64,000 nucleotides of DNA from contig CM106585.1 in the NCBI GenBank assembly GCA_048013815.1, positions 10,478,001-10,542,000 on the forward strand. Reading direction: 5' to 3'. This document shows positions 27,281-49,631 of the stretch, piece by piece. The DNA is from Setoptus koraiensis. Taxonomy: Eukaryota > Animalia > Arthropoda. The stretch's first letter is position 1, and every line of letters begins with the position of its first letter. Position numbers and translations under genes: made by a program. The notes under the pieces are model-generated. The model was not told the DNA's origin, did no database searches, and saw only the letters and a program-made list of their open reading frames with translations.

Positions 27281-29719
27281 TCAGACATGCTTATATTTAG
27301 ATTGGCGCGTTTTAGTAGGTTCGCCAGTTCCAAACACCGGCAATAACTGGCGGTTGACTTTGACTCGGATAGACGCTTCAGAAAGTAGCTCTCCATCAAC
27401 GTTCCAGCTGCTATATCCTTCATCTTCCTTCGCTCGATCTTCGGCGTTTACATTCTGGGATATATCGGGACTGGCAACAAAGTCGAACTGCCTGCAACGG
27501 TAAGCATCGACATACTTGAGATCAAACTTGAGATAAATGTAGAAAAAAAAAGAATTAGTCATTAATATTATAGAAGCTAATGATAAAGTCATTACATGCT
27601 TAAGAATATGTAGACTTACTGGACTTTTCTTTGTCCATCCTGTCCTTAATAGATAGTTTAAATACTGAATCCTAGAACAAGAAGATACAAGTATAAGATC
27701 AGCGCAACCATTTCCGAGGTGATTGTTGGGAGATAAACCTTTTTTAGTCTGAGGACAGCGGCAAGCCATGACTGCAGTGTTCACACCAATGAAAGAGCCT
27801 TTCTTTCTAACTATGACATATTCTTCAGCATTCTCTTGATTACCATCTTCTTTGCAGAGTGGAACATCGTCACATAAATCTTCATTATTATTGACAGTTA
27901 GATGATTATTGTTCATGTGGCATGCTGCATAAACACTAGAAATACTTTTGCTTTGAATGCTTTCGCCACTATTGTTGTTATTGATTCTATCATCACAATC
28001 AGAGTGATTAATACTGTCACTACTAATGTTGGTCTTGCAACTTTCAGAGGCCTGCATTTGTTGGCTTTTCAATTGAGTTGTCTCCTCAGGTTGCGTGGAC
28101 TTTTCAACAATAGAATGGGAACAAATTGAACAATTTTTTTCGCATCGGGAGCCATCAGAGGGTGAGCCATCCTTCGGTGAGAGTACGATTGTGATTTCAC
28201 CAGAATAACTGCGATGCCGTAAAATATTCTGGGCGGCGCAAACGTCATATCTCTTTGGACCCATCCACCTCAAGGAATCTGAGTTCTTGATAATATCACC
28301 GAAGTAACCATAGCTTACAAAAGTACTTACAAATCTGAGTATATTATGATCTTCTTGTAATGAGTGTACTGAGCAAATGTCTATATTGACCGTTCTGCCA
28401 AGAACCATATTGAGAGCCGCAGTTGTTGAGTCATTTGTACCAATAACACCAAAAGAATTTGCATCTGTGGAGCCTGCACCTATAACTCCTATCGGCAATA
28501 TTGGAGACTCGAGCCTCCTTCCAATTCCGCCCAATCCTGATTTTAATTTAGATATCTCGATAGTATTTAGTTTATCCTCTTCGTGAGAACTGTTTTCGTC
28601 GTTTGTCATGTATTTTCTATTTGCTCTAAAAAGGATTCCGTTCATAAGTTCCCCAAACATACCATCACCTCCAACACAGATGATCCCATTGTACCTGTTT
28701 AAATCAGTAGTTGAGTTTTCAATCATTTGGCGAGCATGGTTTGCATACTCTGTCACTATCACCTCAGTATTTATATTTGCAACATCGAAAATGTATTCAA
28801 CTTTATTTTTATATATTTCCAGGGCTCGTCCTTTGCCACCATACGGGTTTATGAAAACGAGCAAACTTTTAGGTCTACCTTCGAATAGAGTCCTGGTGGC
28901 ATGCTTTATTTGCGAAGCCAATTCATCGATCGGAGTTCTCGTAGTATCCTTAGATTTATTGCATATGCTATTATCGAAAGTACTTGAAGGTTCTATGATC
29001 AAAGATTTAAGTATGAGCTGCCGACCTCGAGTAGCTTTCTTTTCAATCACATAATAAAGTTTAACCACTTTGACCGATTCACTTGCTTCTGACAGATGAT
29101 TTTCGCTACCGATATACTGCGACTCCTTGTCTTTCCATTTTTCAGTCTTGTCTCTTTTATCGATGCAAAACCGAGACTGCTCATTAATTTTCCTATCATT
29201 GGTCTGGCTCGGATGCACTGCTAATTTATTCAAAGAAGAGGCAGATTGAGCAGAGAAAGTTCCGCTTTCATTGCTACTTTCCGCATCTACGAATCCAAGA
29301 CTACCGCTTTCACCAGATACAGGGGAAGGCGATTTTGACGACGAGTAAGTAGATGATGATCTTGCAGAGTTGTACTCATCAATATTTTCCTTGTCTACAG
29401 TGGTCGACAATGGTGGACTCGAGTCTTGCGCTAATTTGTCATCTATGTTTGCGCACAAATCACATTGAATTGACTTTTTTAGCTTCAGAGAACTTTTTGA
29501 GCAAAAACATGTCTTGACAGAGATCAAAGAACTAAAATTGATTTTCTTTTGCCTTGAGAGTCTATATTTCGCTGACCGCTTGTGCACTGACTGATTTTCG
29601 CTATCCGCAGTGGGTTCTTGATTGGAATATACCAAAACCAATTCTTTGTTTTCACTTATCGATAGAATACATGGTCGACAATTTATGATGAAATTTCCCT
29701 TAAATGATTGTAGTGACAT
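27281..29719 (-). CDS. CERK: Ceramide kinase; exons 29719-27620 and 27526-27281 (781 aa spliced)
   Basis: DAGK catalytic motifs VFINPYGGKG, CVGGDGMFGEL, IGAGSTD, GYFGD, LRWMGPKRYD; CERK-type CxxxCxxC (CEKNCSIC) and CRCPQTKKGLSP..HLGNGCADLILV. Confidence 0.92.
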   Translation of the reverse strand: MSLQSFKGNFIINCRPCILSISENKELVLVYSNQEPTADSENQSVHKRSAKYRLSRQKKINFSSLISVKTCFCSKSSLKLKKSIQCDLCANIDDKLAQDSSPPLSTTVDKENIDEYNSARSSSTYSSSKSPSPVSGESGSLGFVDAESSNESGTFSAQSASSLNKLAVHPSQTNDRKINEQSRFCIDKRDKTEKWKDKESQYIGSENHLSEASESVKVVKLYYVIEKKATRGRQLILKSLIIEPSSTFDNSICNKSKDTTRTPIDELASQIKHATRTLFEGRPKSLLVFINPYGGKGRALEIYKNKVEYIFDVANINTEVIVTEYANHARQMIENSTTDLNRYNGIICVGGDGMFGELMNGILFRANRKYMTNDENSSHEEDKLNTIEISKLKSGLGGIGRRLESPILPIGVIGAGSTDANSFGVIGTNDSTTAALNMVLGRTVNIDICSVHSLQEDHNILRFVSTFVSYGYFGDIIKNSDSLRWMGPKRYDVCAAQNILRHRSYSGEITIVLSPKDGSPSDGSRCEKNCSICSHSIVEKSTQPEETTQLKSQQMQASESCKTNISSDSINHSDCDDRINNNNSGESIQSKSISSVYAACHMNNNHLTVNNNEDLCDDVPLCKEDGNQENAEEYVIVRKKGSFIGVNTAVMACRCPQTKKGLSPNNHLGNGCADLILVSSCSRIQYLNYLLRTGWTKKSPVSLHILKHVMTLSLASIILMTNSFFFYIYLKFDLKYVDAYRCRQFDFVASPDISQNVNAEDRAKEDEGYSSWNVDGELLSEASIRVKVNRQLLPVFGTGEPTKTRQSKYKHV

Positions 29720-36053: not shown

Positions 36054-38640
36054 TCAATTCTTTTTTGCTTCATCATTCTTATCTGACTTGGCACTACCAC
36101 TCTTCTCATCATCTTCCTTCTTTGCCTCCGCCTCTTTCTTTTCATCTTTGCTCTCAGCGTCACCTTTCTTCTCATTGCCGAACAGTTTCTTAATACCACC
36201 AACTACAACATTATCTTTCTCACTCTTCTGATTCTCGTCTTTGGCGTCCTGTCCGTTCGTATCAGATCCCAGCAATTTCTTAATGCCGCCAACGACAACA
36301 CCGTCCTTGCCTTCCCCGCTACCATCTCCGGCTTTGTCTTGCTTCTTCGATTGTTTGTCCTCGGAGGCCTCCTTGTCCGAACCGAACAACTTTTTCAGAC
36401 CACCAACTACCGCGCCATCCTTCGTTTCTCCAGAGTCTTTGGCCCCTTCAAGGTGATCTTCTTTCTGACCTTTGGCCTTGTCATCAACCTGTTCGTCAGT
36501 ATCGGATCCGAGCAACTTCTTTATGCCACCGACAACAACACCGTCCTTCTTCGAGTCACTTTTGTTCGCATCTCTGCCATGTCCCGCTGATTGTGCTTCC
36601 TTTGAGGCTCCCTCTTGATCGTGCTCTTCATTTGAGCCAAACAATTTCTTAATGCCACCGACCACGACACCGTCCTTCTTTACATCATGCTTATCCTCGG
36701 CCTCGTCATGGCTATTCGTTTCGTCGTGTTTGGCCTTCTCTTCGTCGTCGTGCTTGTCAGCACCGAACAATTTCTTTATGCCACCGACCACAACGCCATC
36801 CTTCTTTTCCTCATCCTCATCCTTGGCCTCATCTTGTTTCTTGGCCTCACCCTGATGCTCGGCCTCATCTTGGCTCTTCGTTTCGTCGTGTTTGTCAGCA
36901 CCGAACAATTTCTTTATGCCACCGACCACAACGCCATCCTTCTTTTCCTCATCCTCATCCTTGGCCTCATCTTGTTTCTTGGCCTCATCCTGGCTCTGCG
37001 CCTCGTCATGCTTGGCCTTCTCTTCGTCATCGTGTTTGTCAGCACCGAAAAACTTTTTTATGCCGCCGACTACGGCGTTATCTTTCTTTTCGCCATTTTC
37101 ACTTTTGGCCTCGTTCTCTTTCTCCGCCTTGGCCTCTTCTTTGCCCTGTCTCACCTTCTCATCGTTCTGGGTATCGTCCTTTTCGTCCTGTGCGTCGTTC
37201 TTATCTGCTCCAAACAACTTCTTTATACCGCCGACCAATCCAGTATCTTTCTTGTCCTGTTGCTCTTCGGGTTTCGCCTTCTCGTCGTCATCCTGCTTGC
37301 CAGTACCGGACGATCTCTTCGTGCCCCCAACTACCCCTTCCATTTTTTCATCATCACTAGCAGAGGACTTCTGTCCGCCAGAAAATTCACCACTCCTTGC
37401 ATCACTCCCTTTTTGTTCTGAACTGACAGAAATTGGTTTTGAGAACAGATCGATACTTTAGACTCGGGTTGCAAGCTATTCTATACCTTTAATTCTATTA
37501 ATAACACCATCATCGTAATGATAATTATGTACTATTGTGAATAACGTAGGCGTCAATGTCGTCATCGTAGACCATGGTGATCTTACCTTCGCCATTCTCG
37601 CCATCCTCACCATTGTCTTCATCAGGCACCGGTTCACCGAATTCATTTATTCTCTTGTGAAGCTGCTTCCTCAATCTATCAGAGGCCAGACTGATCAACG
37701 GTTTGGCCACTATGGTCGACGGAGCAATCGTATGCAAATACACGGTGCCAGCTCCTAGTCCCAACGACACCGCTTTGTGGAGCATTTGTTTGCCCACGCC
37801 TCCACGATGCTCAGCTAGACATCGTTTGAGAACGTGTAATTGTTGAGACGTGCAGCCGACAGTAGCGAAGGGTATCAACAGAAGACGGATATAAACAACA
37901 ATGTAAATATGGAGTTGACAAAACATTCGCACGTGTGAATATCTCGATCAATACATTGTCTGTACCTACTTTCGAGTAGCTCCTTTTCACTGGCTTTTTG
38001 CAACTCTTCGGCGGCAATTGTTGCGCCCGCATCTTTCGCTTTAGCAACCAAAGGCTTGGCGATCAATGCAGCATTTTTTAGTGTCGCAACTATTGGAGCG
38101 CCCTCAATATCTGTCAGTCATTTGGTATTTATTAAAAGATCAATGATTGTTTATGGCCATTAACGAGTTTCAAGTGTGAAATTGATGTAAGGTCCGTTCG
38201 CAGGTTAGTTAGTGGCATAATTTCCATTAACGATAGCGTTATGCCGGTCACACATCGGTATTATATAAAATAGTCATTCATTGAAATGGCGTGAGTAACA
38301 GATAGGAATATCAAGAGAATGAGAGGGCGTTGTTACTGTTGAGTTTATCGAAACGAGTAGTAGTGTTTGTGTTCAACCGGTAACAGTCAATTAATTAACC
38401 GAACAGATAATCAACTGGATGGCAGCAAGCTAAGCGGTAGCAATCTAATGTATCGCTTAGTGCAAAAACTTCATCGACACAAACAACAACAACAACAAAT
38501 ATTGTCGGAACAAATATCTTTAGCGACAACAGTGAAGCAACAACAGGCGCCTTGGTGTCTCTATCTGGCCTACCTTGACTGGTTAGTGTGAGAGCTACTA
38601 GTAGTAGCAAGCTACTGACTACTACTATCAGAGATCGCAT
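36054..38640 (-). CDS. Orphan secreted protein A (599 aa): signal peptide, two Ala-rich helical modules, then D/E/K-rich spacers between 9 (V)VVGG[IL]KK[LF][FL]G repeats; exons 38640-38574, 38110-37970, 37814-37587, 37417-36054
   Basis: Exon 1 reads MRSLIVVVSSLLLLVALTLTSQ; three phase-1 GT-AG introns join to 1800 nt in frame; the large last-exon ORF is strongly repetitive and hydrophilic. Confidence 0.8.
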
Positions 38641-39490
38641 CTTCTCTTACTCGTGGCTGGCCTGTTTTTTCTTCTCGTTCACTCTAGCTCGTTATTACCG
38701 TCTCTCTAAACAAATATCCCTCTGATATAAGTTAACGAAACCACTATTATAGCTATGCCAGCGCTTGTCCTGATTCGTCTATGATGTGTTATTAAATAGC
38801 TCCTGTCGATGTAATAATAAATTCTCCGATAAAGGGTACAAACAAATATAATGATGATATAACCCTGACTGGCACAAGAAACAACAACAATTATTTTCTT
38901 TTTCTTTTTTCTCTCTATCAGTCTATCTGGCGAACAGCATGCATTTAAGAAATGCATTTGACTAGCTGAAAGCGCCCCGGGTACGCAATCCATATTTAGT
39001 AACTAGCATGAGTGTGTTCGCTTCTCTGGCAGTCACGACAGGCGCCAGACGATGCATATGACTAATTCGCTAGTTTAAATATAGATAGCAAGAATCACAT
39101 GCCTCACCAAAAGTAATGATCGTAATAATCAGGATTTTTGGCGCGAATAATTTCTAGGAACTTTCAAACTGGATGAAAGGTACGACCAGGGCCTCTACAA
39201 AGCACCTGTTATGATTCAAATGTGTGATGTTTAAATGCTGGGATTGGGAACCGGGAAACACGCGACAAACCTACATCAAGCTGGTCTAAAAGCTACAGAA
39301 GCGAAATAGACGATAGCTAATTGGTAAGAAACTTTAGCGAGAACTCAACAAGAGAAATTTTGTGCTTTTTTCCTCTTCGATTTTATTACATCAAGTTGTT
39401 GTTTTGCGCTCTGCCTAGCGCTTTCGGCAACACATCCTTGACGGCGTAACGTCCACTGTCGAGATTTTATCACAGTCGGCCTATTACTGC

Positions 39491-40161
39491 TTACTTTTCC
39501 TTCTTCTCCTCCTCTTTGTTCTCTTCACCTTTGGCCTCTTCTCCCTCCTTAGCCTCACCTTCTTCGGCCTTTTCTCCCTCTTTGGCGTCACCCTCTTTGG
39601 CTTCACCCTCGGCCTTGGCCTCACCCTCTTCTTTCTTTTCTTCACCCTCTTCTTTCTTTTCTTTAGCTCCCTCTTTATTTTCAGCTGGTGCAGCCTCGTC
39701 CTTCTTCTCTGACTCGAAGTGACTGCCGACTATCGGAATTTTGGACATGACTTTTTCGATGGTACCTCCAATTTTGTGCAAAAGCGAACCTGCTTAAAGA
39801 ATTACGAAGAATTGGAAGATGAATATCGATTCATTATTAATTGTCATAAGAGGTGCGATAAAGATTGGTTCTTACCAACTTTCAGTTATGTTTAGAATAC
39901 TTTCTTTAGTGTGATTGGTAGCGGTTGGCATTAATTTGATACTTACTACTATTATTAGCAGCGCTGCCAACGGTTTCGCCTTCGCACATAACTGGTTACA
40001 TGTTTGGTGGATTAGAGATACAGGTTAGCAAGTGTGTAATTTATTCTAGAAATTCTTCGTCATCCAGGTTTATCAATTATCACTGAAATAATTTTAACAA
40101 ACTTACCCTGAGCGACGGCCAGAGCAACCAAGCAGAATAGAGCCAATTTGTACGATGCCAT
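39491..40161 (-). CDS. Orphan secreted protein B (132 aa): signal peptide, amphipathic LLHKIGGTIEKVMSKIPIVGSHF, E/K/G/A tail; exons 40161-40107, 39991-39947, 39789-39491
   Basis: MASYKLALFCLVALAVAQVMC signal peptide; two GTAAGT donors; phase-1 junctions give 399 nt in frame. Confidence 0.8.
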
Positions 40162-41223
40162 TGTTAATATGTGTCGGTTGGTTTTGGATGGGGTTTGGAA
40201 ATTATTGAATAAATATTTATCAATTTGAAATTGACTTATTCTTCAGTTTATCGCAAGAGTTAAGAAAAGGGTTTGGACAGAATTTTGCGAAAGCAACCAC
40301 TATATATAGTCTCTTTTCTCTACACAAACTAGTGCACACTTTTCAACTGGGTCTTTTAATAGTTTTTCGGTGACGTATGCCAACATGTTGTTGGCACCCG
40401 CACAAATATTTCACCAAAATATGATAGTCAGAGAGAACTTGGATTCGCCAGCAACAGTTCGACATTTTATCAAGGTCACGCGAAGCCATTTTTGACTATT
40501 TTCGGTAACACCGAAATCACGTGTGAAGACAATGGCAAAACAAGTGGAAAAATAATGGGACGAATCGTGGTAGTCATGCTGCAAACTTTTGACCATATTG
40601 AACTGGCTTAATGGCGTCATCTCTGGTACACATGCCAAGATAATAGTAGACCATGAGCGTAGATAACTATTTCAATCTATCCACCAATTTTGGACCCCGG
40701 TCAATTTTTTTGCTCGGCGGAATTCGTTGGCCGCGTGACTCTAGTTTTATTTAACACTCCGTCGATTGATATTTGCGGGCGGACTCATAACGCCCAACAT
40801 TACCTGGCATGTGCCTCTACTCTCGGCGGGTGGCGGGAGGCACTTCTTTTGCTTCACCTCGCAGTATTCGCTGATTTCCTTGGAAACACTCTAATTCTCT
40901 GAACTTCACCCGCTCTCTACCAGACTACAGTTTCGGAGCGGTGAGGCTAGTAAGGAAGAGAAAAGTTTTAACTCATCTTTTTGGCCCCAGCAAAAGGCTC
41001 GTCGTGTTTTTCATAAGTTGTTGTGAGTTTATTTTGGGATATATGATACGCCGTGCACACCAATCTTATTCGCTGTCTATACGTCTAGATAACATTTTTA
41101 TCTAGCTGTACAGTTGTGCAATTTGAATGTGAGCTACCAAAATCAACATCTACGTGTTATACTTGACGATCGTATAAAATACAGATTGCTCGATCCTTCC
41201 TGCTGCTACTATTCTCAGTTAGC

Positions 41224-42194
41224 TCATTCTTTTTTGTCCTCGGCCTCGTCCTTCTTTTCTTCAGTCTTTTCCTCTGGCTTGGCCTCTTCCTCTTTGGCCT
41301 CCTCTTTGGCCTCCTCTTTGGCCTCCTCTTTCTTCTCCTCGCCCTCCTCTTTCTTTTCCTCGCCCTCCTCTTTCTTTGCCTCCGCCTTCTCTTCTGGTTC
41401 CGCTTCGGCAGTCTTGGCTTCTTCCTCGGGCTTGGCTGCGTCATCCTTTTTTTCTTCAGCCTTTTCTTCCTCTGGTTTAGCCTCCTCTTTCTTTTCCCCA
41501 CCAGCCTTTGCATCTTCCGGTTTGGCCTCATCAGCCTTGGCCTCTTCCGCCGGTGCCTCTTCGGGCTTGGATTCTGCGGGTTGCTGATTGGTGGCCTGCT
41601 GAGGCGCCCCAGGAGCCGGTTGCTGCGGAATCTGAGCTAATTCGACGCCCTGTTCATTGGTTGCCGGATTCACTGGCGGGGGTGCTATACTCGATCGGCC
41701 CAAGCGGTCGACGCCACGTCCTACAAGGGATTTACCAGAATCAATGATACCTTTTCCAAATTCGCCCACAGTTGACACAATGCCTTTGAGTAGGCCCCCG
41801 GTGTGTCCAGTGACTTCGCGAGCGAATTTTGCACTTCCCGATGCTGCGCTACGTATCAGACTTTTCTGTTGTTGATTGTAGTCGCTAGCTATCTGCTGTC
41901 CCATAGCGCCGGCCTGCTGAACAACGGCCCCGGTTTGGTCTGCGACTTGGGTGGCAGCCGCGCCGACAGTGCTAGCGGCTTGCTGAACAGCCGGTTGTTG
42001 TTGGGGCGCTAGAACGATATAAAATGAAAAGGCGATCGAAAGAACGAAATCAAATCTTCAGTTAATCCATCTTCTAATCTAACATGAAATTTATCTGAAT
42101 GACTGTGTGCCAGTTGCGAATACTCACCCGGTGCATCCTGGCCGTGAGAATATCCGGCTATACAGAATAGTAGCACAAAACATGCGAGAGACAT
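41224..42194 (-). CDS. Orphan secreted protein C (283 aa): signal peptide, Q/A linker, Gly-rich amphipathic core, EEAKPEE tail; exons 42194-42128, 42008-41224
   Basis: MSLACFVLLFCIAGYSHG signal peptide; GTGAGT donor and TTCTAG acceptor in phase 1; core is homologous to protein D. Confidence 0.85.
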
Positions 42195-42725
42195 CGTGGA
42201 CAAATATCGATTTATTACAATCATCGCGTTGAATTGAAATTCAATTTTAATTAACCAATGAATAGTTTATATGAATATCAGTTATATAAATAATATGTTT
42301 GTTGATGTCAGTCTCGAATTAAAACTTTTTATGCAGTCTTGCACGAATCGAACGACAAACAGCATGCCGCTCATCACAAAGTCGCATTCACTGTTTACGT
42401 CATGAAACGTGACGTTCGCGGTCCAAAAATAGATGATGGAGCGAATCATCCTCTCAAAAGTCGCCGTATCACGAGTTAGGTGCACTGGAGAACTCCCCAT
42501 CTGACACTCTCCAACATCTCAAACGCCGATAACGAAGTCTACAAAGAATTCGACGCAACCAAACAAAACAAGATTAGTTCTCGGATAAAATTCAGCACTA
42601 ATTACTGGCCAAACTGTTTGCTGATATTGGAGTCAGCTCAGGCCCTCAACGACGGGCGTTTTTATTTTTTCGCTCATCAGAGCTTCTGGCTCTTAACTGG
42701 TGTTTGGTTGACAATTTCAATCGTT

Positions 42726-43722
42726 TCATTTTCTCTCAGCCTTAGCTTCTTCGGTCTTGGCCTCTTCCGGTTTTGCTTCTTCTGCTTTGGGTTCCTCAGT
42801 CTTGGCCTCTTCCGGTTTTGCTTCCTCTGTTTTGGCTTCGGTCGGCTCAGTGGCGGCATTGTTGGTCTGAGCCACCTGTGCTTCAGCTTCTGGGTGGACG
42901 AGAAATAAAATCAAGTTGTTTCGAGTCAATGGTTTGGGAAAAAAGAATCTCATCGGAACAAAGTTTTCACAAAAACTCTGCAAGTGCTCGATAATTGTGT
43001 ATCGTCATTTCGGACTCACCATTTGCTTGTCCGTTGATCAATTCATTACCTTGATCTGCTGGGGTCGCACTCTCACCGTTCGTCGCTGATGGTACAAAAG
43101 GTTTCATCAATCGCGATCGGCCAATGCGTTGTGCACTACGAGTTACCGCATTGCCACCAGACGATACCATATCTTTGCCGAATTGCATTATGGTTGATGC
43201 GATCCCACCTAATAAGCTACCAGTGTGTCCAACGACTTCGCGCCCTAGATTCACAGTGCCAGAAACTGCACTATGTACAATATTTTTTTGACTATCGTCA
43301 TATTGAGGATGCACAAAATCGCTGGCCATCTGCTGGCCGCTCGCTCTGACCCTCTGAAGCGATTCCATGTCTTTGTGCAACCTTTTCGAAGCGCTATTCT
43401 GGACAGCAGAACCTAAATTTTTCGCAGCTTCCGAAATGGAGGTCTCTTTTGGACTTTCCGCCCCTGTTTCAGCCTTTGCGTCTGTTTCAGCTTTTGTATC
43501 TGTTTCAGCCTTTGTGTCCGCTCCAGCCTTCGTCTCTGTCTCTTCAGGGTGCAGAGGAAAAGATAAGAATGCCTCAGTTTCGCCGCAATCGCCGAATCAC
43601 TTCGAAATCAAAAGAAATGGTGATAACTTACCTGCAGTGGCATCTTCTGCGTGGGAGTAAGTGGAAAATAGGCACAATAGAATAGAGCAGAGCAGAGCGA
43701 GCGCTAGATGATATGTTGACAT
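42726..43722 (-). CDS. Orphan secreted protein D (about 258 aa), tandem paralog of C; exons 43722-43632, 43541-43020, 42889-42726
   Basis: MSTYHLALALLCSILLCLFSTYSHA signal peptide; KAET repeats; core GQQMASD..SAVSG..REVVGHTGSLLGGI..QFGK aligns with C; EAKPEEAK tail. The exon 2 acceptor is the least certain junction. Confidence 0.8.
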
Positions 43723-45121
43723 CTTGTATTGTTTTGTAATTTGACCACTGTATATATTTATTGTATTTAAATTTTACCAGTGATTCGTTTTCGGGAGTGA
43801 TTGAAATAAGTAAAAGATTAGAAACCAATGAGAAGGGTGGTGTTATCCTAGTCCTTACAGGCAAAACCAATTTTAGTTGATAGAAAATGCGTTTTGCCAA
43901 CCATGTTTGAGCTACCCGACGAAACGCTGTTGGTCTGCATGTTTAAAAATAGTTTTTTCTAGATAAATTTTTCACACAAGTTTAGAACAATCCAGGCACG
44001 CTATGACTTTCGCTGGATAGAACAGTCATGCGGTAGATGCGACACGGAAAATAAATGGGCGGCGAAACAATCATATAGCATTATTGATTGAATAGAGAAA
44101 CCGGGGATGTGAGACAAGTGTGGTTGTTTCCGGTGAAAATCGATTTGTCAGATGCCTTTTCCCGCTGCTACACATATTTCAATCTGGAACCTCCGTTTAA
44201 ATGTTTTTCCAGAATTCTATTCGAGATGGGAAATAGTACTCTCGCCTCCATGGATGGAACATACACTGCTTCCCGCAACTTTTTCTCTGCTCGAAATCAG
44301 ATTTTCGAATGCAGAAAAAAAATCTGAAAATGACCCGATTCGGATTCGCTGAAATTGCACTTCTCTGATTAAGATTCCGAAGGTCACTTGTATTACAGCA
44401 TTTCTGAGTAAATTCTGGAAAAAATGACGTCTGCTTTCGATAGAATTTGTCGGTGAGAAATCTAGTTTCCAAGCAACCGGAAGCGACATGGTGAGCAACT
44501 GAAATCGAATAAAAGAACATAATAGATTTGCCGGAACGATTCTCCAGAGAAAATTGCTGCAACTGCACTTTTTATGTTTTTCGCCCATAGCCCATCATGG
44601 AGAATAACGTATGGGCACCTGTAGCGTGATGCCAACGTCATTGTGGCGCGTATGTCGTCATTTCAGACACGTTACGGGAAAGGCTGCAGACGCAACAGAT
44701 TGACCAAACACACTATTTGCTCGTATCAGAGGTGTCTTTCCATAACCAGTTGGGGGGAAAAGAAATACGATGAAAGCCATCTAGGCCTTATTGTTTTGCG
44801 TGATGTGGATCATCGTTTTACTTTATTGGTAGCCAGAGTTTACTTACGATGACGATGACGAGAACACTCAAACAAAACAATTTCCACAGCTGATCAAACA
44901 ATCTGGATTGGCCTCGTAACGAATTGGTCCGAACTTTCGCTCGCACTATCATCATAGAAAATGGTTTATGGCAACTTGGGCATGCTCATCTGTTTATTGT
45001 TGGACCCGAATCCAATGACGTAGTCTCATCATGAGGTAACTTTGGATTTGACACTAGGCAAACAATCACGAGTCAACATGGAGAGATGAATGTCAATAAT
45101 TGCTTATACTAATCTCGTTAG

Positions 45122-45128
45122 TATAAAT
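45122..45128 (+). promoter_or_regulatory. TATA box candidate for secreted gene E
   Basis: TATAAAT about 125 nt upstream of the ATG. Similar TATA-like words lie 90-140 nt upstream of genes A (38745-38751), B (40301-40308) and C (42282-42288). Confidence 0.35.
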
Positions 45129-45249
45129 TGATGTGTCTGGTCTGCAATATAATTCAATCGTCTTTGAATACTCTCGCTGCAATACAACAACCAATCGTCA
45201 ATCATCAATATCTACAGAACATTTCAAGAGTTCTTAAGCACTAAAAAAC

Positions 45250-45833
45250 ATGTCTTCAATGAAAATTATCTCCAGTATATTGGTTGCCTGCTTGGCCCTA
45301 GGAATGGCAGGTAAGATTACTACTCATTTATATCCTCAGGTTTATTGCACTAAACTGATTGCTTGAGCTGAAGCTAATCGTGCACTTTTTCACATCTATT
45401 TGGATACAATTCAAAGTTGCCCAAAACATTCCAACTTCCATCAACGGTATGATCAACAAGGCTGAGGCAAATATGCCAAAGATTCCATCAATCAGAGGAA
45501 ACATTCCAAACATGCCCAACGTTGACTTGCCCAACATGCCCAACATTAACATGCCCAGCGTTGACTTGCCCAACATGCCAAACTTGCCAAGCTTGCCTAA
45601 CATGCCAAGCTTGCCCAGCCTGAGCTTACCCAGCATGCCGCGTATACCCAGTATGCAAGGTAAGTAAATTGAATCTATGAATTGATCAAAGATCTATTTG
45701 ATTATGAATAATCATGGAATCAAGGAACTAACAGTAGAATAACTTTTCGTTAACAAAACCCACTCACACGAATCCATGTCACATAGGTATGATGAACGAC
45801 GTCATGGGAGCGGTCAACAGAATGCTCGGTTAA
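45250..45833 (+). CDS. Orphan secreted protein E (116 aa), Pro/Met/Asn/Ser-rich P-x-x repeats; exons 45250-45310, 45417-45659, 45787-45833
   Basis: MSSMKIISSILVACLALGMA signal peptide; GTAAGA and GTAAGT donors in phase 1; repeats PNM/PSL/VDL; AATAAA overlaps the stop codon. Confidence 0.82.
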
Positions 45834-46255
45834 ATAAAATATTTGTGCTAAGATTTGTAAAACTGGAATGAGAACATGAAAGTATCTCTTATGGATAAAT
45901 AATATTCCGGCAATGGGAATGCACAAAAGTTTCTATCGAGATACCCATGTTCAACATTACGAACGAACATTTAAATATAATAGTTTTACCAAACTTTGAG
46001 ACGTATTTTATATGTAATTTGAACACAACACGATCTACTGGGTGACCAGAGTGATATGCACAATTATTCTTTATTGATTTTATGTATTTTTTCTATAGTT
46101 ACCAGTTAGTTGATATTGCTTCAATCAAAAGACCAATGATGCTTTCAATACATCATCTTTTTCTTTGAATCTATTTGAATATCCTTGATATAAATATATC
46201 AAAGATATTCAAAATTTTCCGACACAAAAGTCACTCGTTATAATAATATCTCTCA

Positions 46256-46837
46256 TCAACACAAAGGATCTACCTCTGAGATTTTTTCAAGATAAAGTGA
46301 TATCATCTCGGGTTTTAGGTGGTTTCTGCTCTTCAACAATGTTTGACGACGATCTTACTTTCAATCTTACAGACTTGATTACAACATCTTTCTTGGAACT
46401 CAGTAGCTTCTTGTCCAGCTTGTCCTATTACCAAATATTTAACAATGTAGACGAACGAGATCATGAAGAATTTCAGTTCAAAATGATCACAGAGAAGAGT
46501 TGGTGATGCTGGTAGTTGTTTGATTACAAATTGACTTACTGGTTTTTCGAATAAGCCCTTCAAGTGATCGTCCCTCTAATTCTAAATCATCTGATTTCAC
46601 CGAGCTGGTTCTACCAGCGTGCCTCCGTTTACGAACTATGCTGATGCCACCGAATGAATTCATAACAAGTTCGGAGCCATTTTGTCGTGCGTGTATACTG
46701 CACAGTTTTTGGAGGTCTCTTTTAATTCCGGTTGTGTCACAATTTTCGAAACGATGCTCTATGTAATAGCAACAAGATGACTTTATAGTGAACAATATCA
46801 CTACCAAAGAGATTAACACATTCGTCCACTGGATCAT
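46256..46837 (-). CDS. Insulin/relaxin-like peptide precursor (127 aa); exons 46837-46540, 46424-46359, 46275-46256. Retaining the last intron gives a stop at 46333.
   Basis: Signal peptide; B-chain-like CDTTGIKRDLQKLC; C-peptide containing RKRR; RKTR formed across the splice junction; A chain CCNQVCKIEKVDPLC* has canonical CC-x3-C-x8-C spacing. Confidence 0.75.
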
Positions 46838-47069
46838 CGCTGTGGATTTGTAGCAGTAGTCGAACAACTCTAAACTGGCAATCTAGGTGATAAGAATTCA
46901 AAATCTATAACGACCTAGGTGCAACTTGAACGATATCTTGTTAGGAAGAGTAGCGTAATGGTGATTAGCTGAGAAATGATAGATATTGCAGTCTATGCAG
47001 TCTTTAAGTTTCCATTAGTACTCTACATCGAAGTTTCCCTCCTATACATTGAACCAACTTTTCAATGTT

Positions 47070-49631
47070 TCAAGTCAAACAATTGTTTATATTTCCATTA
47101 TATTTGACGTCAGCTTGTGAAACTTTGAGCGATTTCAACGATACGCCTGATGGGCTGTTAGGTTGATTTTGCAAAAACATTATATGTTTACGTAACCTTC
47201 GGATCATAATGGGTATCTCGTCAAGGGTATATCTAAACTTCATGGTATGCTGTTTCGGCGAGCACTTACTACACAGTTTGTCTTTGTGTTGTAAACAAAC
47301 CAATTTATACTTTGCACATTCACATGATAACGCAGAGAGAAAACACGTGGTCTTACAGTAATCGCATTGCCTTTCATCGTCAGGATACAACTCAAATTTG
47401 TGTCTGATAGAGTTTGTGACTCCCCAATCTAGTGTTTTGGCTCTGAGTACTTGCTCAATCTCGTTCATTTTAACAATGTCTCTATAGGTGGCTAAGGTCG
47501 ATGCGGCATCCAGCTTGGACGGTTCATTTGCCATTTTGCAGATAAGCTCATCATGACTAAAAACTGGATAACGACGCAACATAGAGTAGTGGTCAATACA
47601 ATTTCGTCCCATAGACAACCAATCGGCGGGGGCAAAATTTACTGCCTCTGCAAAATTCAATCCTTGATTGAAGCCAGTGTGATAGGCTCGCGGAAAAGTT
47701 ACGACAAACTCGCCAGAGAATTGGTCTACTCGATAGATGGGTACTTCATCGCCCATCAATGTGTTTGGATTACAGATAGTAACCAATTGATGGAGGAGGT
47801 CAGGTTGCGATTGGAAAAGATCCGGAGCGACACGCTTCATGGATCGCTCAAATTTTTCCGCTTCTGAGCCAGGAACACCATACCAGGTTTTTGGATCCCC
47901 ATGATGCAAGTAATTGATCGAGTAAGTCCAATGATCTTCATTATGCCAACAAAATGTTGAAAAGCACATACCCACATACATCCATGGTATAATCATACCG
48001 CTAATGTTTGCATTAATGTAACGAAAGACACTACCTTCCGCAATTGGCATATTATTCAAGTTCCACGGATGGTCTATGTACTCACAATCTGACGGGTGTA
48101 GATCTTTTGAGGTGCGCGTGGGAAATCCACTGCCAAATTCATTGCAATGCAGATCGGCGCCATATTCAACGCAAACGTTTTCCTCAAGACACGATACCAA
48201 TCTCCAGTACTCTTGTTCCACTAGATTCAATGGTACCTGATCGCTGGGCATATTGAAGTAGTCACTCTTGAACTGATTAGCCATGTCACCAAACTCAGAT
48301 AGAGTATAGTGATTTTTTGATTGGGTGAAACCAAAGTCAGCGTAATGCTTAGGTCTCGCGCTAACTAAAAGTGCCAGGCACGAATGGCAATGCCACGGGC
48401 CAGTTTTGGGCATATCTTTTAGAGGTGGTATCAAACATGTAATGTGGAATTTGAGATGGCAGTTATCGCAGGTGACTAATAAATGTGATGGCTTAATTTG
48501 GTTACATTGTACACAATCATCGCGTCTCTTAGTTTTGGTCTCATCTTGAGTGCCGTTGTTGTTCACACAGCCGGGCATTTTAGGTCCGGCGCCATAAGTT
48601 CTCAGCTTGAGCAATTCTTTGCTGCCCGTGGATGAGGAGGAGGTGTCGCTGTGGTCGCTTTGATTTAGTATGTGATCAGGTTGTTCGTGTTGTTGCAGAT
48701 CGTGTTGCTGCTTGTTGTCGTTATGTTGGTGTTGCGTTGTTGTGGTGCTGGTGTTGCTGTGGTTACCCTGAGTGTGTTTAGCGGCCATTGTCTTGTCTGA
48801 TTCATTAAGATGATTATCGTTGTGGTCTAAGCCACTACTACTACTGTTAGTGTTTGCACTACTGTGATTAGCATGTGTGCCGTTGTTGTTTGCTGTTGCA
48901 TTGGTGGTTGTAGTCGTTGTGGAGCCGTTGGCGTCTGAGGCGGCGGCGGCCGCCGCTGCTGCTGCCGCTGCGCTTGAATAGAAATCACCTATTGTGGCTC
49001 CGCTTTGAAATATGTCGTGCGGATAAAGAATTTTCTCGTAGTGATGCCGCAACAATGACGCAACAGTTCCACGATTGTTTGTGTTGACTTGATAGCCCAT
49101 TCTGTTTGTCACTTTGGCCCATTTTCGTTCCCTGACGCACACCTCAAAGCCGCCCTCCGCTTTGACGCACTCGTACAATTTGTGTAAATCCAACAGCTGT
49201 CCCTCTATGTATGGCACCTTAATGGTTGAGCCTTGTAATTCCCAAAATTTAAACAACTGATCAATAAAGTTTAACTTAGTCCTAGTGGACGCCTCCAATT
49301 CGTTGAGACGTTGAACGCGTGGCGTGAATTTAAAATAGTTTGTATCGACAGCAAACGGTGGCTTAAATGATTTCGGTGGTACAATCTTACATATTCCATA
49401 TTGTTCTGCCTGAGATCTAATCTTAGTTATATAATCGATGGGGCCACGCTTAAATTCGGCAACTGTCGGATAAAAGACGGGCGCCTCTTGGGGCACCTTG
49501 AACGAATGCTGTTGGGTCCTCATTTGTTGTACGTGTTGTTGCTGTTGCTGTTTGTGTTGGTGGTGGCTTATCTGCTGCTGCTGTTGCTGCTGGTCGCAGT
49601 TAGATAATGGCGGCTGCTGTGGCTGTCCCAT
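47070..49631 (-). CDS. KDM5: Lysine-specific demethylase 5 (lid/JARID1), single exon, 853 aa: JmjN, ARID, PHD1, JmjC, C5HC2; no PLU-1, PHD2 or PHD3
   Basis: EAPVFYPT..ICKIVPP (JmjN); LDLHKLY..GGFE (ARID); CVQC..CDNCHLKFHITCLIPPL..WHCHSC (PHD); catalytic FCWHNEDH and FPRAYHTGF; ERQCDYCKTTCFLS..CLQH (C5HC2). Confidence 0.96.
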   Translation of the reverse strand: MGQPQQPPLSNCDQQQQQQQISHHQHKQQQQQHVQQMRTQQHSFKVPQEAPVFYPTVAEFKRGPIDYITKIRSQAEQYGICKIVPPKSFKPPFAVDTNYFKFTPRVQRLNELEASTRTKLNFIDQLFKFWELQGSTIKVPYIEGQLLDLHKLYECVKAEGGFEVCVRERKWAKVTNRMGYQVNTNNRGTVASLLRHHYEKILYPHDIFQSGATIGDFYSSAAAAAAAAAAASDANGSTTTTTTNATANNNGTHANHSSANTNSSSSGLDHNDNHLNESDKTMAAKHTQGNHSNTSTTTTQHQHNDNKQQHDLQQHEQPDHILNQSDHSDTSSSSTGSKELLKLRTYGAGPKMPGCVNNNGTQDETKTKRRDDCVQCNQIKPSHLLVTCDNCHLKFHITCLIPPLKDMPKTGPWHCHSCLALLVSARPKHYADFGFTQSKNHYTLSEFGDMANQFKSDYFNMPSDQVPLNLVEQEYWRLVSCLEENVCVEYGADLHCNEFGSGFPTRTSKDLHPSDCEYIDHPWNLNNMPIAEGSVFRYINANISGMIIPWMYVGMCFSTFCWHNEDHWTYSINYLHHGDPKTWYGVPGSEAEKFERSMKRVAPDLFQSQPDLLHQLVTICNPNTLMGDEVPIYRVDQFSGEFVVTFPRAYHTGFNQGLNFAEAVNFAPADWLSMGRNCIDHYSMLRRYPVFSHDELICKMANEPSKLDAASTLATYRDIVKMNEIEQVLRAKTLDWGVTNSIRHKFELYPDDERQCDYCKTTCFLSALSCECAKYKLVCLQHKDKLCSKCSPKQHTMKFRYTLDEIPIMIRRLRKHIMFLQNQPNSPSGVSLKSLKVSQADVKYNGNINNCLT

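Follow-up and report, generated by a model that had tools for sequence, protein, structure and literature searches.

What do five small genes encode that stand side by side in an arthropod genome, each opening with a short hydrophobic exon and none resembling a known protein family? The question is raised by a locus of Setoptus koraiensis (Arthropoda) within a 64,000-nucleotide stretch of DNA, here called the window (GenBank assembly GCA_048013815.1, contig CM106585.1, positions 10,478,001 to 10,542,000 of the forward strand), whose own numbering is used throughout. An initial annotation, made from the sequence alone, had placed five spliced genes between positions 36054 and 45833, A to D on the minus strand and E on the plus strand, and had read them as one co-expressed, lineage-specific secretory module. 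We describe here five independent, spliced, expressed, protein-coding genes within these limits, in a locus of a well-known kind, an orphan cluster of secreted low-complexity genes. They are not a single module by descent: C and D are homologous, B is possibly related to them, and A and E are unrelated. For the role of A to D, composition and architecture point tentatively, with a probability of about 40%, to an extracellular coating or protectant.

Five spliced and expressed genes

Four sequencing runs (X1, X2, X5, and X6) were compared over positions 37300-43299. Run X2 has a flat depth of ∼139 over this interval and is DNA. X1, X5, and X6 are RNA, because their depth is zero across introns and intergenic DNA and spliced contigs are present. 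A 6.7-kb contig of another species, L001, is syntenic with positions 49524-42724 of the window. It keeps the start codons, the signal peptides, all GT/AG splice sites, and the intron phases of D and E, and the introns have diverged, with indels. The ratio of nonsynonymous to synonymous substitution (dN/dS) against L001 is 0.19 for D (0.13 in its core) and 0.21 for E, at a dS of 0.7-1.0, and D and E are therefore constrained protein-coding genes. RNA joints, conservation in L001, and dN/dS bear out the five spliced genes at the coordinates first proposed. Non-coding DNA and chance open reading frames (ORFs) are ruled out by the RNA joints, dN/dS, and the constraint on the repeat motif of A. The exons are:

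38574..38640, minus strand: gene A exon 1, ATG and signal-like peptide MRSLIVVVSSLLLLVALTLTSQ, phase 1; RNA joint 38574/38110 in X5
37970..38110, minus strand: gene A exon 2, first part of the N-terminal domain; 5' boundary from RNA, 3' boundary (GT 37969) predicted
37587..37814, minus strand: gene A exon 3, second part of the N-terminal domain; 3' boundary from RNA, acceptor 37814 predicted
36054..37417, minus strand: gene A exon 4, acidic, predicted disordered region with repeats
40107..40161, minus strand: gene B exon 1, signal-like peptide MASYKLALFCLVALAVAQ, phase 1; RNA joint 40107/39991 in X1, X5, and X6
39947..39991, minus strand: gene B exon 2, 45 nt, VMCEGETVGSAANNS; both flanking joints in three RNA runs, depth up to 204
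39491..39792, minus strand: gene B exon 3, amphipathic helix HKIGGTIEKVMSKI and G/E/K/A tail; RNA joint 39947/39792
42128..42194, minus strand: gene C exon 1, signal-like peptide MSLACFVLLFCIAGYSHG, phase 1; RNA joint 42128/42008 in X6
41224..42008, minus strand: gene C exon 2, Q/A-rich stretch, core at ∼41656-41907, P/Q linker, acidic E/K/A/P tail
43632..43722, minus strand: gene D exon 1, signal-like peptide MSTYHLALALLCSILLCLFSTYSHA, phase 1; ATG, peptide, and GT donor conserved in L001
43020..43541, minus strand: gene D exon 2, T/E/K/A repeats, pre-core segment, conserved core at ∼43078-43344
42726..42889, minus strand: gene D exon 3, acidic PEEAKTEEAK tail; RNA joint 43020/42889 in X5 and X6, acceptor conserved in L001
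45250..45310, plus strand: gene E exon 1, signal-like peptide MSSMKIISSILVACLALGMA, phase 1
45417..45659, plus strand: gene E exon 2, P/N/M-rich repeats (PNMPN...), conserved in L001 with in-frame indels only
45787..45833, plus strand: gene E exon 3, GMMNDVMGAVNRMLG and stop; acceptor and peptide conserved in L001

Exact GT..AG joints were found in RNA for A exon 1/2, both introns of B, the intron of C, and D exon 2/3, and in A, B, and C they agree with the predicted bases that link the signal exon to the body of the protein. A exon 3/4 (37587/37417) is likewise used in RNA, where a 12-nt loose end of an X5 contig (CGAGAATGGCGA, at 37419/37417) equals the end of exon 3. The A exon 2/3 joint is predicted only. 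D exon 1 lies outside the compared RNA stretch, and the D exon 1/2 joint rests on conservation in L001; both E junctions rest on conserved GT/AG sites and reading frame in L001. Gene E is covered by RNA-labelled runs at shares of 0.15-0.39, where exons only would give at most 0.47 and DNA runs give 0.72-1.0. Summed assembler word depth, a poor gauge of expression, is 170-204 for B, 13-38 for C, 9-10 for D, and 0-5 for A.

As proposed, each gene opens with a short, hydrophobic, signal-like exon. The first exons encode ∼18-25 residues each, of which one segment is strongly hydrophobic (10-mer Kyte-Doolittle maximum 2.8-3.25 inside the first 20 residues), and all end in intron phase 1. Putative cleavage sites after small residues (AxA type) are AVA|Q in B, SHG|Q in C, SHA|E in D, and GMA|V in E; in A the site is not evident. 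These N-termini were judged only by their n/h/c architecture, and on that architecture they are predicted signal peptides that would direct the five proteins to secretion.

TATA-like words, announced at 90-140 nt upstream of four of the five genes, lie roughly in that range for three. They stand at -210 (A), -147 (B), -94/-77 (C), -34 (D), and -128 (E); the word of D is inside the transcript and is therefore no TATA box. The words of A (TATATTT, 38850-38844) and B (TATATAT, at 40308) precede the RNA 5' ends, at 38815 and 40266-40267, by 35-40 nt. RNA of B and D ends 13-20 nt past an AATAAA (B at 39387, with the RNA end at ∼39363-39370; D at 42666). C has an AATAAA at 41033 and a poly(A) tail, seen as a run of 21 T at 41007, 21-26 nt after the signal.

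The mature proteins are very hydrophilic and free of Trp. The statement that they are almost devoid of Cys stands for A, C, D, and E, and in B there is one Cys beyond the signal region, in its small exon. No known domain had been recognised, and Pfam agrees: hmmscan with eight exon translations returned no family for any exon of A to E at E≤1. Membership of the dehydrin, LEA_4, synuclein, and cuticle families was among the candidates rejected by that search. A tblastn search of the whole window with the five proteins revealed no additional members, and a literature search with peptide strings from the proteins and two run accessions matched no papers. No relatives came up when C exon 2, A exon 3, and A exon 4 were searched against a word-indexed database. 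These blanks are weak because that database is without this genome, and the searches with C exon 2 and A exon 4 were probably swamped by low-complexity words. An atlas language-model search with A exon 4 and E exon 2 gave best scores of 0.60-0.63, which are meaningless. The claim of lineage specificity accordingly divides: it holds for the core shared by C and D, and the orphan status of A, B, and E rests on weaker negatives.

A new family formed by C and D, and its possible relative B

Among the five proteins, C (283 aa, two exons) and D (258 aa, three exons) are the only significant pair (blastp with composition correction, E = 2e-38). They share a core of ∼80 residues, HSA[AV]SG...REV[TV]GHTG.L..G...FGK...R..R[LIM][GA]RS, which is 51% identical across ∼84-89 aligned residues. 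A profile of this core, run with HMMER against 1.84 billion cluster representatives, had three matches, two of them credible. P0001 (8e-41) is a mis-framed D ortholog on L001, syntenic beside KDM5, and P0002 (1e-21), 147 aa long, comes from a 1-kb contig in a different run; their hosts are two unannotated assemblies. The third match, a long repetitive protein resembling a phage tape-measure protein, was dismissed as chance. The profile had no match among PDB sequences. Because P0001 and P0002 are the only relatives among the 1.84 billion representatives, the family is real, undescribed, and narrowly distributed, and C and D are tandem paralogues within it.

Both proteins consist of the signal, a Gly/Ser/Ala-rich, helix-prone core with an arginine face, an RxxR-S sequence, a P/Q linker, and an acidic E/K/A/P tail. 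The hydrophobic moments of the cores are 0.72-0.80, reached by 0-1 of 200 shuffles, and the cores are slightly basic (net charge +1 to +4) and the tails strongly acidic (-7 to -25). The core ends in R-[LIM]-[GA]-R-S, which does not vary among C, D, P0001, and P0002. Its arginines also fit a helix face at i, i+4, and i+7; the sequence may be either a convertase site or part of that face. AlphaFold2 predicted the C core as one long helix of low confidence (pLDDT 51).

Upstream of C, an in-frame ATG at 42224 lies ten codons before the start codon (MIVINRYLST-MSLACF...). If the transcript begins at the site predicted from the TATA word, the C signal peptide has a longer, positively charged n-region. 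Short X2 contigs are 90-99% like the acidic-tail repeats of C (41100-41770), with a depth of up to 614 vs. the baseline of 139, and one of them departs from the window at 41763. They may be other alleles or paralogous copies.

Gene B encodes a short (133 aa), highly expressed protein with the same layout as C and D, an amphipathic helix followed by a G/E/K tail. The RNA joints support the gene and correct its structure: the two-exon model omitted the 45-nt exon at 39947-39991, and the last acceptor is 39792. Alternative acceptors of the CAG|CAG type are present at 39789-39794, where RNA shows 39792 only. The hydrophobic moment of the helix is 0.60, matched by seven of 200 shuffles. B has a weak match to the pre-core segment of D (E = 0.012), its signal start MASYKLAL resembles MSTYHLAL, and its tail resembles that of C at the nucleotide level. 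Comparison of its last exon with the C/D profile by hhalign gave no relationship. Because the match is weak and the profile comparison negative, B is only possibly a paralogue of C and D, as judged from these sequence resemblances.

The repeat protein of gene A and the small protein of gene E

Gene A encodes 599 aa in four exons. Two alternative AG acceptors 5 nt apart precede its last exon (37417-37424), and RNA shows 37417 only. That exon carries nine copies, plus one degenerate copy, of KDGVVVGGIKKLFGAD, a hydrophobic-basic motif of 16 residues with the pattern KD[GN]VVVGGIKKLFG[AS]D, set in acidic, His-containing, disordered linkers. Across the nine good copies the proportion of synonymous differences (pS) is 0.74, near saturation, vs. 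0.088 for nonsynonymous differences (pN). From these values the motif is translated, constrained in function, and under strong purifying selection, while the spacers drift. The protein has a grand average of hydropathy of -1.29 and contains neither Cys nor Trp. AlphaFold2 gave exon 4 no secondary structure (pLDDT 44.6, i.e. ∼45), a fully disordered prediction. The N-terminal domain (exon 3) proved unrelated to the C/D profile by hhalign.

Gene E encodes 116 aa in three exons, and its sequence indicates a P/N/M-rich small protein unrelated to the other four. A conserved word, GTATAAAT, lies upstream at 45122. The 3' flank at 45840-45990 is ∼93% identical to L001, vs. ∼69% across the gene. It may be a 3' untranslated region or a regulatory element that E shares with a convergent small gene at 46.3-46.8 kb.

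Possible functions of the predicted secreted proteins

The coating role that we put at about 40% would make A to D secreted disordered proteins of an 'anchor-and-brush' type. Short amphipathic or hydrophobic-basic segments would adsorb, and probably fold, on an extracellular lipid or other hydrophobic surface, and the charged tails would stay hydrated and hold surfaces apart. The outcome would be an extracellular coating or protectant, analogous to LEA (late embryogenesis abundant) proteins and dehydrins. The core moments of C and D and the charge contrast between core and tail argue for it. B, C, and D further resemble alpha-synuclein, apolipoproteins, and group-3 LEA proteins in having an N-terminal Gly/Ala/Ser/Val-rich amphipathic region followed by an acidic tail. 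Unlike these, they have no 11-mer repeats and no Pfam match, and their signal-like peptides would let them act outside the cell. In the language-model atlas the C core lay closest to synuclein, phasin, chlorosome-envelope, and LEA-type surface binders, with scores of 0.68-0.78, a weak lead. If the anchor-and-brush proposal is true, the locus offers a small group of secreted disordered proteins, open to experiment, for studying how surfaces are shielded from drying or cold in very small arthropods; in this group A has a dehydrin-like repeat architecture and C and D share a new conserved core.

The likeness of A to dehydrins (LEA group 2, PF00257) is close in general features. A is likewise long, free of Cys and Trp, His-containing, hydrophilic, and predicted to be disordered, and it carries many copies of a Lys-containing hydrophobic motif that ends in Gly (KKDGVVVGGIKKLFG). 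The canonical K-segment of dehydrins is EKKGIMDKIKEKLPG (PMC5415607), and the A motif agrees with it at ∼5 of 15 positions. A differs in that its VVVGG core is not charged, in being an animal protein with a signal exon spliced on, and in having no Y, S, or F segments. Because the PF00257 model gives no match at E≤1 and about one third of the K-segment positions agree, the likeness is analogy, not membership. The repeats taken together also match the amphipathic membrane helix at the C-terminus of FtsA (PF11983) weakly (E = 0.0013, 20.1 bits, below the curated threshold of 27.4 bits), and no stretch taken singly reaches that threshold. FtsA occurs in an entirely different setting, and the match is only a hint that the A motif could bind membranes. 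In a bolder version of the proposal, A would be an animal protein that came by convergence to resemble the dehydrins of plants and is now routed through the secretory pathway. With B to D it would form an extracellular water-stress or cold protectant that coats membranes or the body surface, and the C/D core would be a new lipid-surface-binding domain; we consider this version improbable.

Several results weigh against the coating role. The initial annotation had ascribed Gly-containing amphipathic helices to A, B, C, and D. The shuffles uphold this for C, D, and B, but the hydrophobic moment of the A repeats is not outstanding among shuffles and they are not clearly amphipathic. A also fails the dehydrin family model, and the atlas scores of the C core lie within a range that shuffled sequences also reach. 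The proposed co-expression is supported insofar as A to D are present in the same RNA runs, but their depths are ∼50-fold apart, and k-mers common to the promoters of A to D or of A to E are not above shuffles, which gives no sign of co-regulation. Finally, the sole RNA contig across position 37342, discussed below, would uncouple the signal of A from its repeats.

Synthesis in a secretory gland and delivery outside the body would give the same proteins a different meaning: A to E would be major constituents of saliva, silk, glue, or cement, or would act in them as effectors, and the charged tails would form a hydrated matrix or bind host or substrate surfaces. We regard such gland products as rather unlikely, if nearly as likely as an extracellular coating; if the account is right, the genes are candidate saliva or silk components. 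Small, TATA-driven, lineage-restricted genes with signal exons in tandem arrangement are what it would lead one to expect, and the great abundance of B in RNA contigs (170-204) agrees with it. Arthropod clusters of secreted low-complexity proteins (salivary, glue, immune-induced, and cuticle) have the same tandem small genes, TATA promoters, phase-1 signal exon, and lack of homologues outside close relatives; the searches turned up no sequence relationship to any such family. The proteins have none of the Cys frameworks, enzyme domains, or Gly/Ser/Tyr blocks typical of silks and cements, and the purifying selection on D and E (dN/dS ∼0.2) is unlike the fast diversification often seen in host-facing effectors. 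A structural role in cuticle, eggshell, or gut lining, proposed above all for the P/N/M-rich E, seems very improbable. Such matrices typically contain secreted low-complexity proteins whose genes are clustered in tandem, and the repeat number of E shifts by in-frame indels between species, but there is no match to a chitin-binding or other cuticle family. Known arthropod cuticle proteins are rich in Ala, Pro, Gly, Tyr, and His, unlike the E/K-rich acidic tails of A to D. The proteins might instead be precursors. Cleavage of C and D at RxxR-S would free a basic, amphipathic, membrane-active peptide from an acidic, neutralising pro-tail, and A would be a polyprotein of 9-10 VVVGGIKKLFG peptides with antimicrobial, toxin-like, or signalling activity. 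The invariance of R-x-x-R-S at the core end in all four proteins fits this, as do the basic core and acidic tail and the pattern of constrained motif and free spacers, which is that of multi-copy peptide precursors. B has no RxxR site, the conservation of the arginines of C and D is explained by a helix face without cleavage, and the A motif has neither flanking dibasic or RxxR sites nor a basic residue after its C-terminal Gly. We consider cleavage into peptides quite improbable. A classical polyprotein with dibasic flanks was rejected for A, where the repeat region (..KK-D-G-VVVGGIKKLFG-[AS]-[DN]..) contains no RxxR or KR.

One alternative concerns A only. A run of six A at 37343-37348 (minus strand) ends in an ATG at 37343 with a good context (AAAATGG). 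The run has six A in the genome and in the DNA run (depth ∼139), which gives one uninterrupted ORF of 599 codons, but the only RNA contig across the site (X5, depth 4.7) has seven, with the insertion at 37342. With seven A, the signal-bearing ORF would stop ∼22 codons on, and the repeats could start only at ATG 37343, which the indel leaves untouched, without a signal. The repeats would then be a 429-aa cytosolic hydrophilin, and the same mRNA would carry, in exons 1-3, the code for a second, short secreted protein; that the frames of the three exons match that of the repeats has a chance of 1/3. Against this stand the low depth of the contig and its course, since it exits the compared stretch 23 nt short of the predicted stop and a compensating change is possible there. 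The continuous ORF with six A is more likely than the uncoupled form with seven, because the sequence leading into the ATG (SASDDEK-MEGVVGG) looks like the acidic linker and motif found further on and because translated dicistronic mRNAs are rare in animals, and we hold the cytosolic form of A to be unlikely.

Neighbouring genes and consequences for annotation

The cluster was said to sit between CERK and KDM5, and both flanks are present, at 27284-29719 (CERK, minus strand) and 47073-49631 (KDM5 ORF, minus strand). Between them there are also a 6-kb stretch without assignment and the small gene at 46.3-46.8 kb. The latter (46256-46867, minus strand) stands between E and KDM5 and is conserved in L001 (ORF 2443-2910), and its 126-aa ORF has no Pfam match. 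The KDM5 ORF contains JmjN, ARID, PHD, JmjC, KDM5 C-helical, and zf-C5HC2 domains and ends at 47070 after 853 aa. It is without PLU-1 or a C-terminal PHD, and the minus strand as far as 29.7 kb shows neither. The ORF of L001 terminates at the corresponding position (L001 2159); KDM5 may be short, or its remainder may lie elsewhere.

The gene models matter for annotation, because ORF-based callers mis-frame the genes A to E and even call the antisense strand of repeats. P0001 reads through the second intron of D, and the third exon, with the acidic tail, is in the wrong frame. A called 'gene' on L001 is the antisense strand of E, and misleading ORF calls are found at L001 3606-3935 and 5787-6686. 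In the window, long antisense ORFs run over A (36687-37421, plus strand) and E (45328-45636, minus strand). RNA runs X1 and X5-X13, at least 99% identical to the window, bear the organism labels A, D, and E, and DNA runs X2-X4 are labelled B and C (these letters are not gene names); one species has apparently been filed under several names in the runs.

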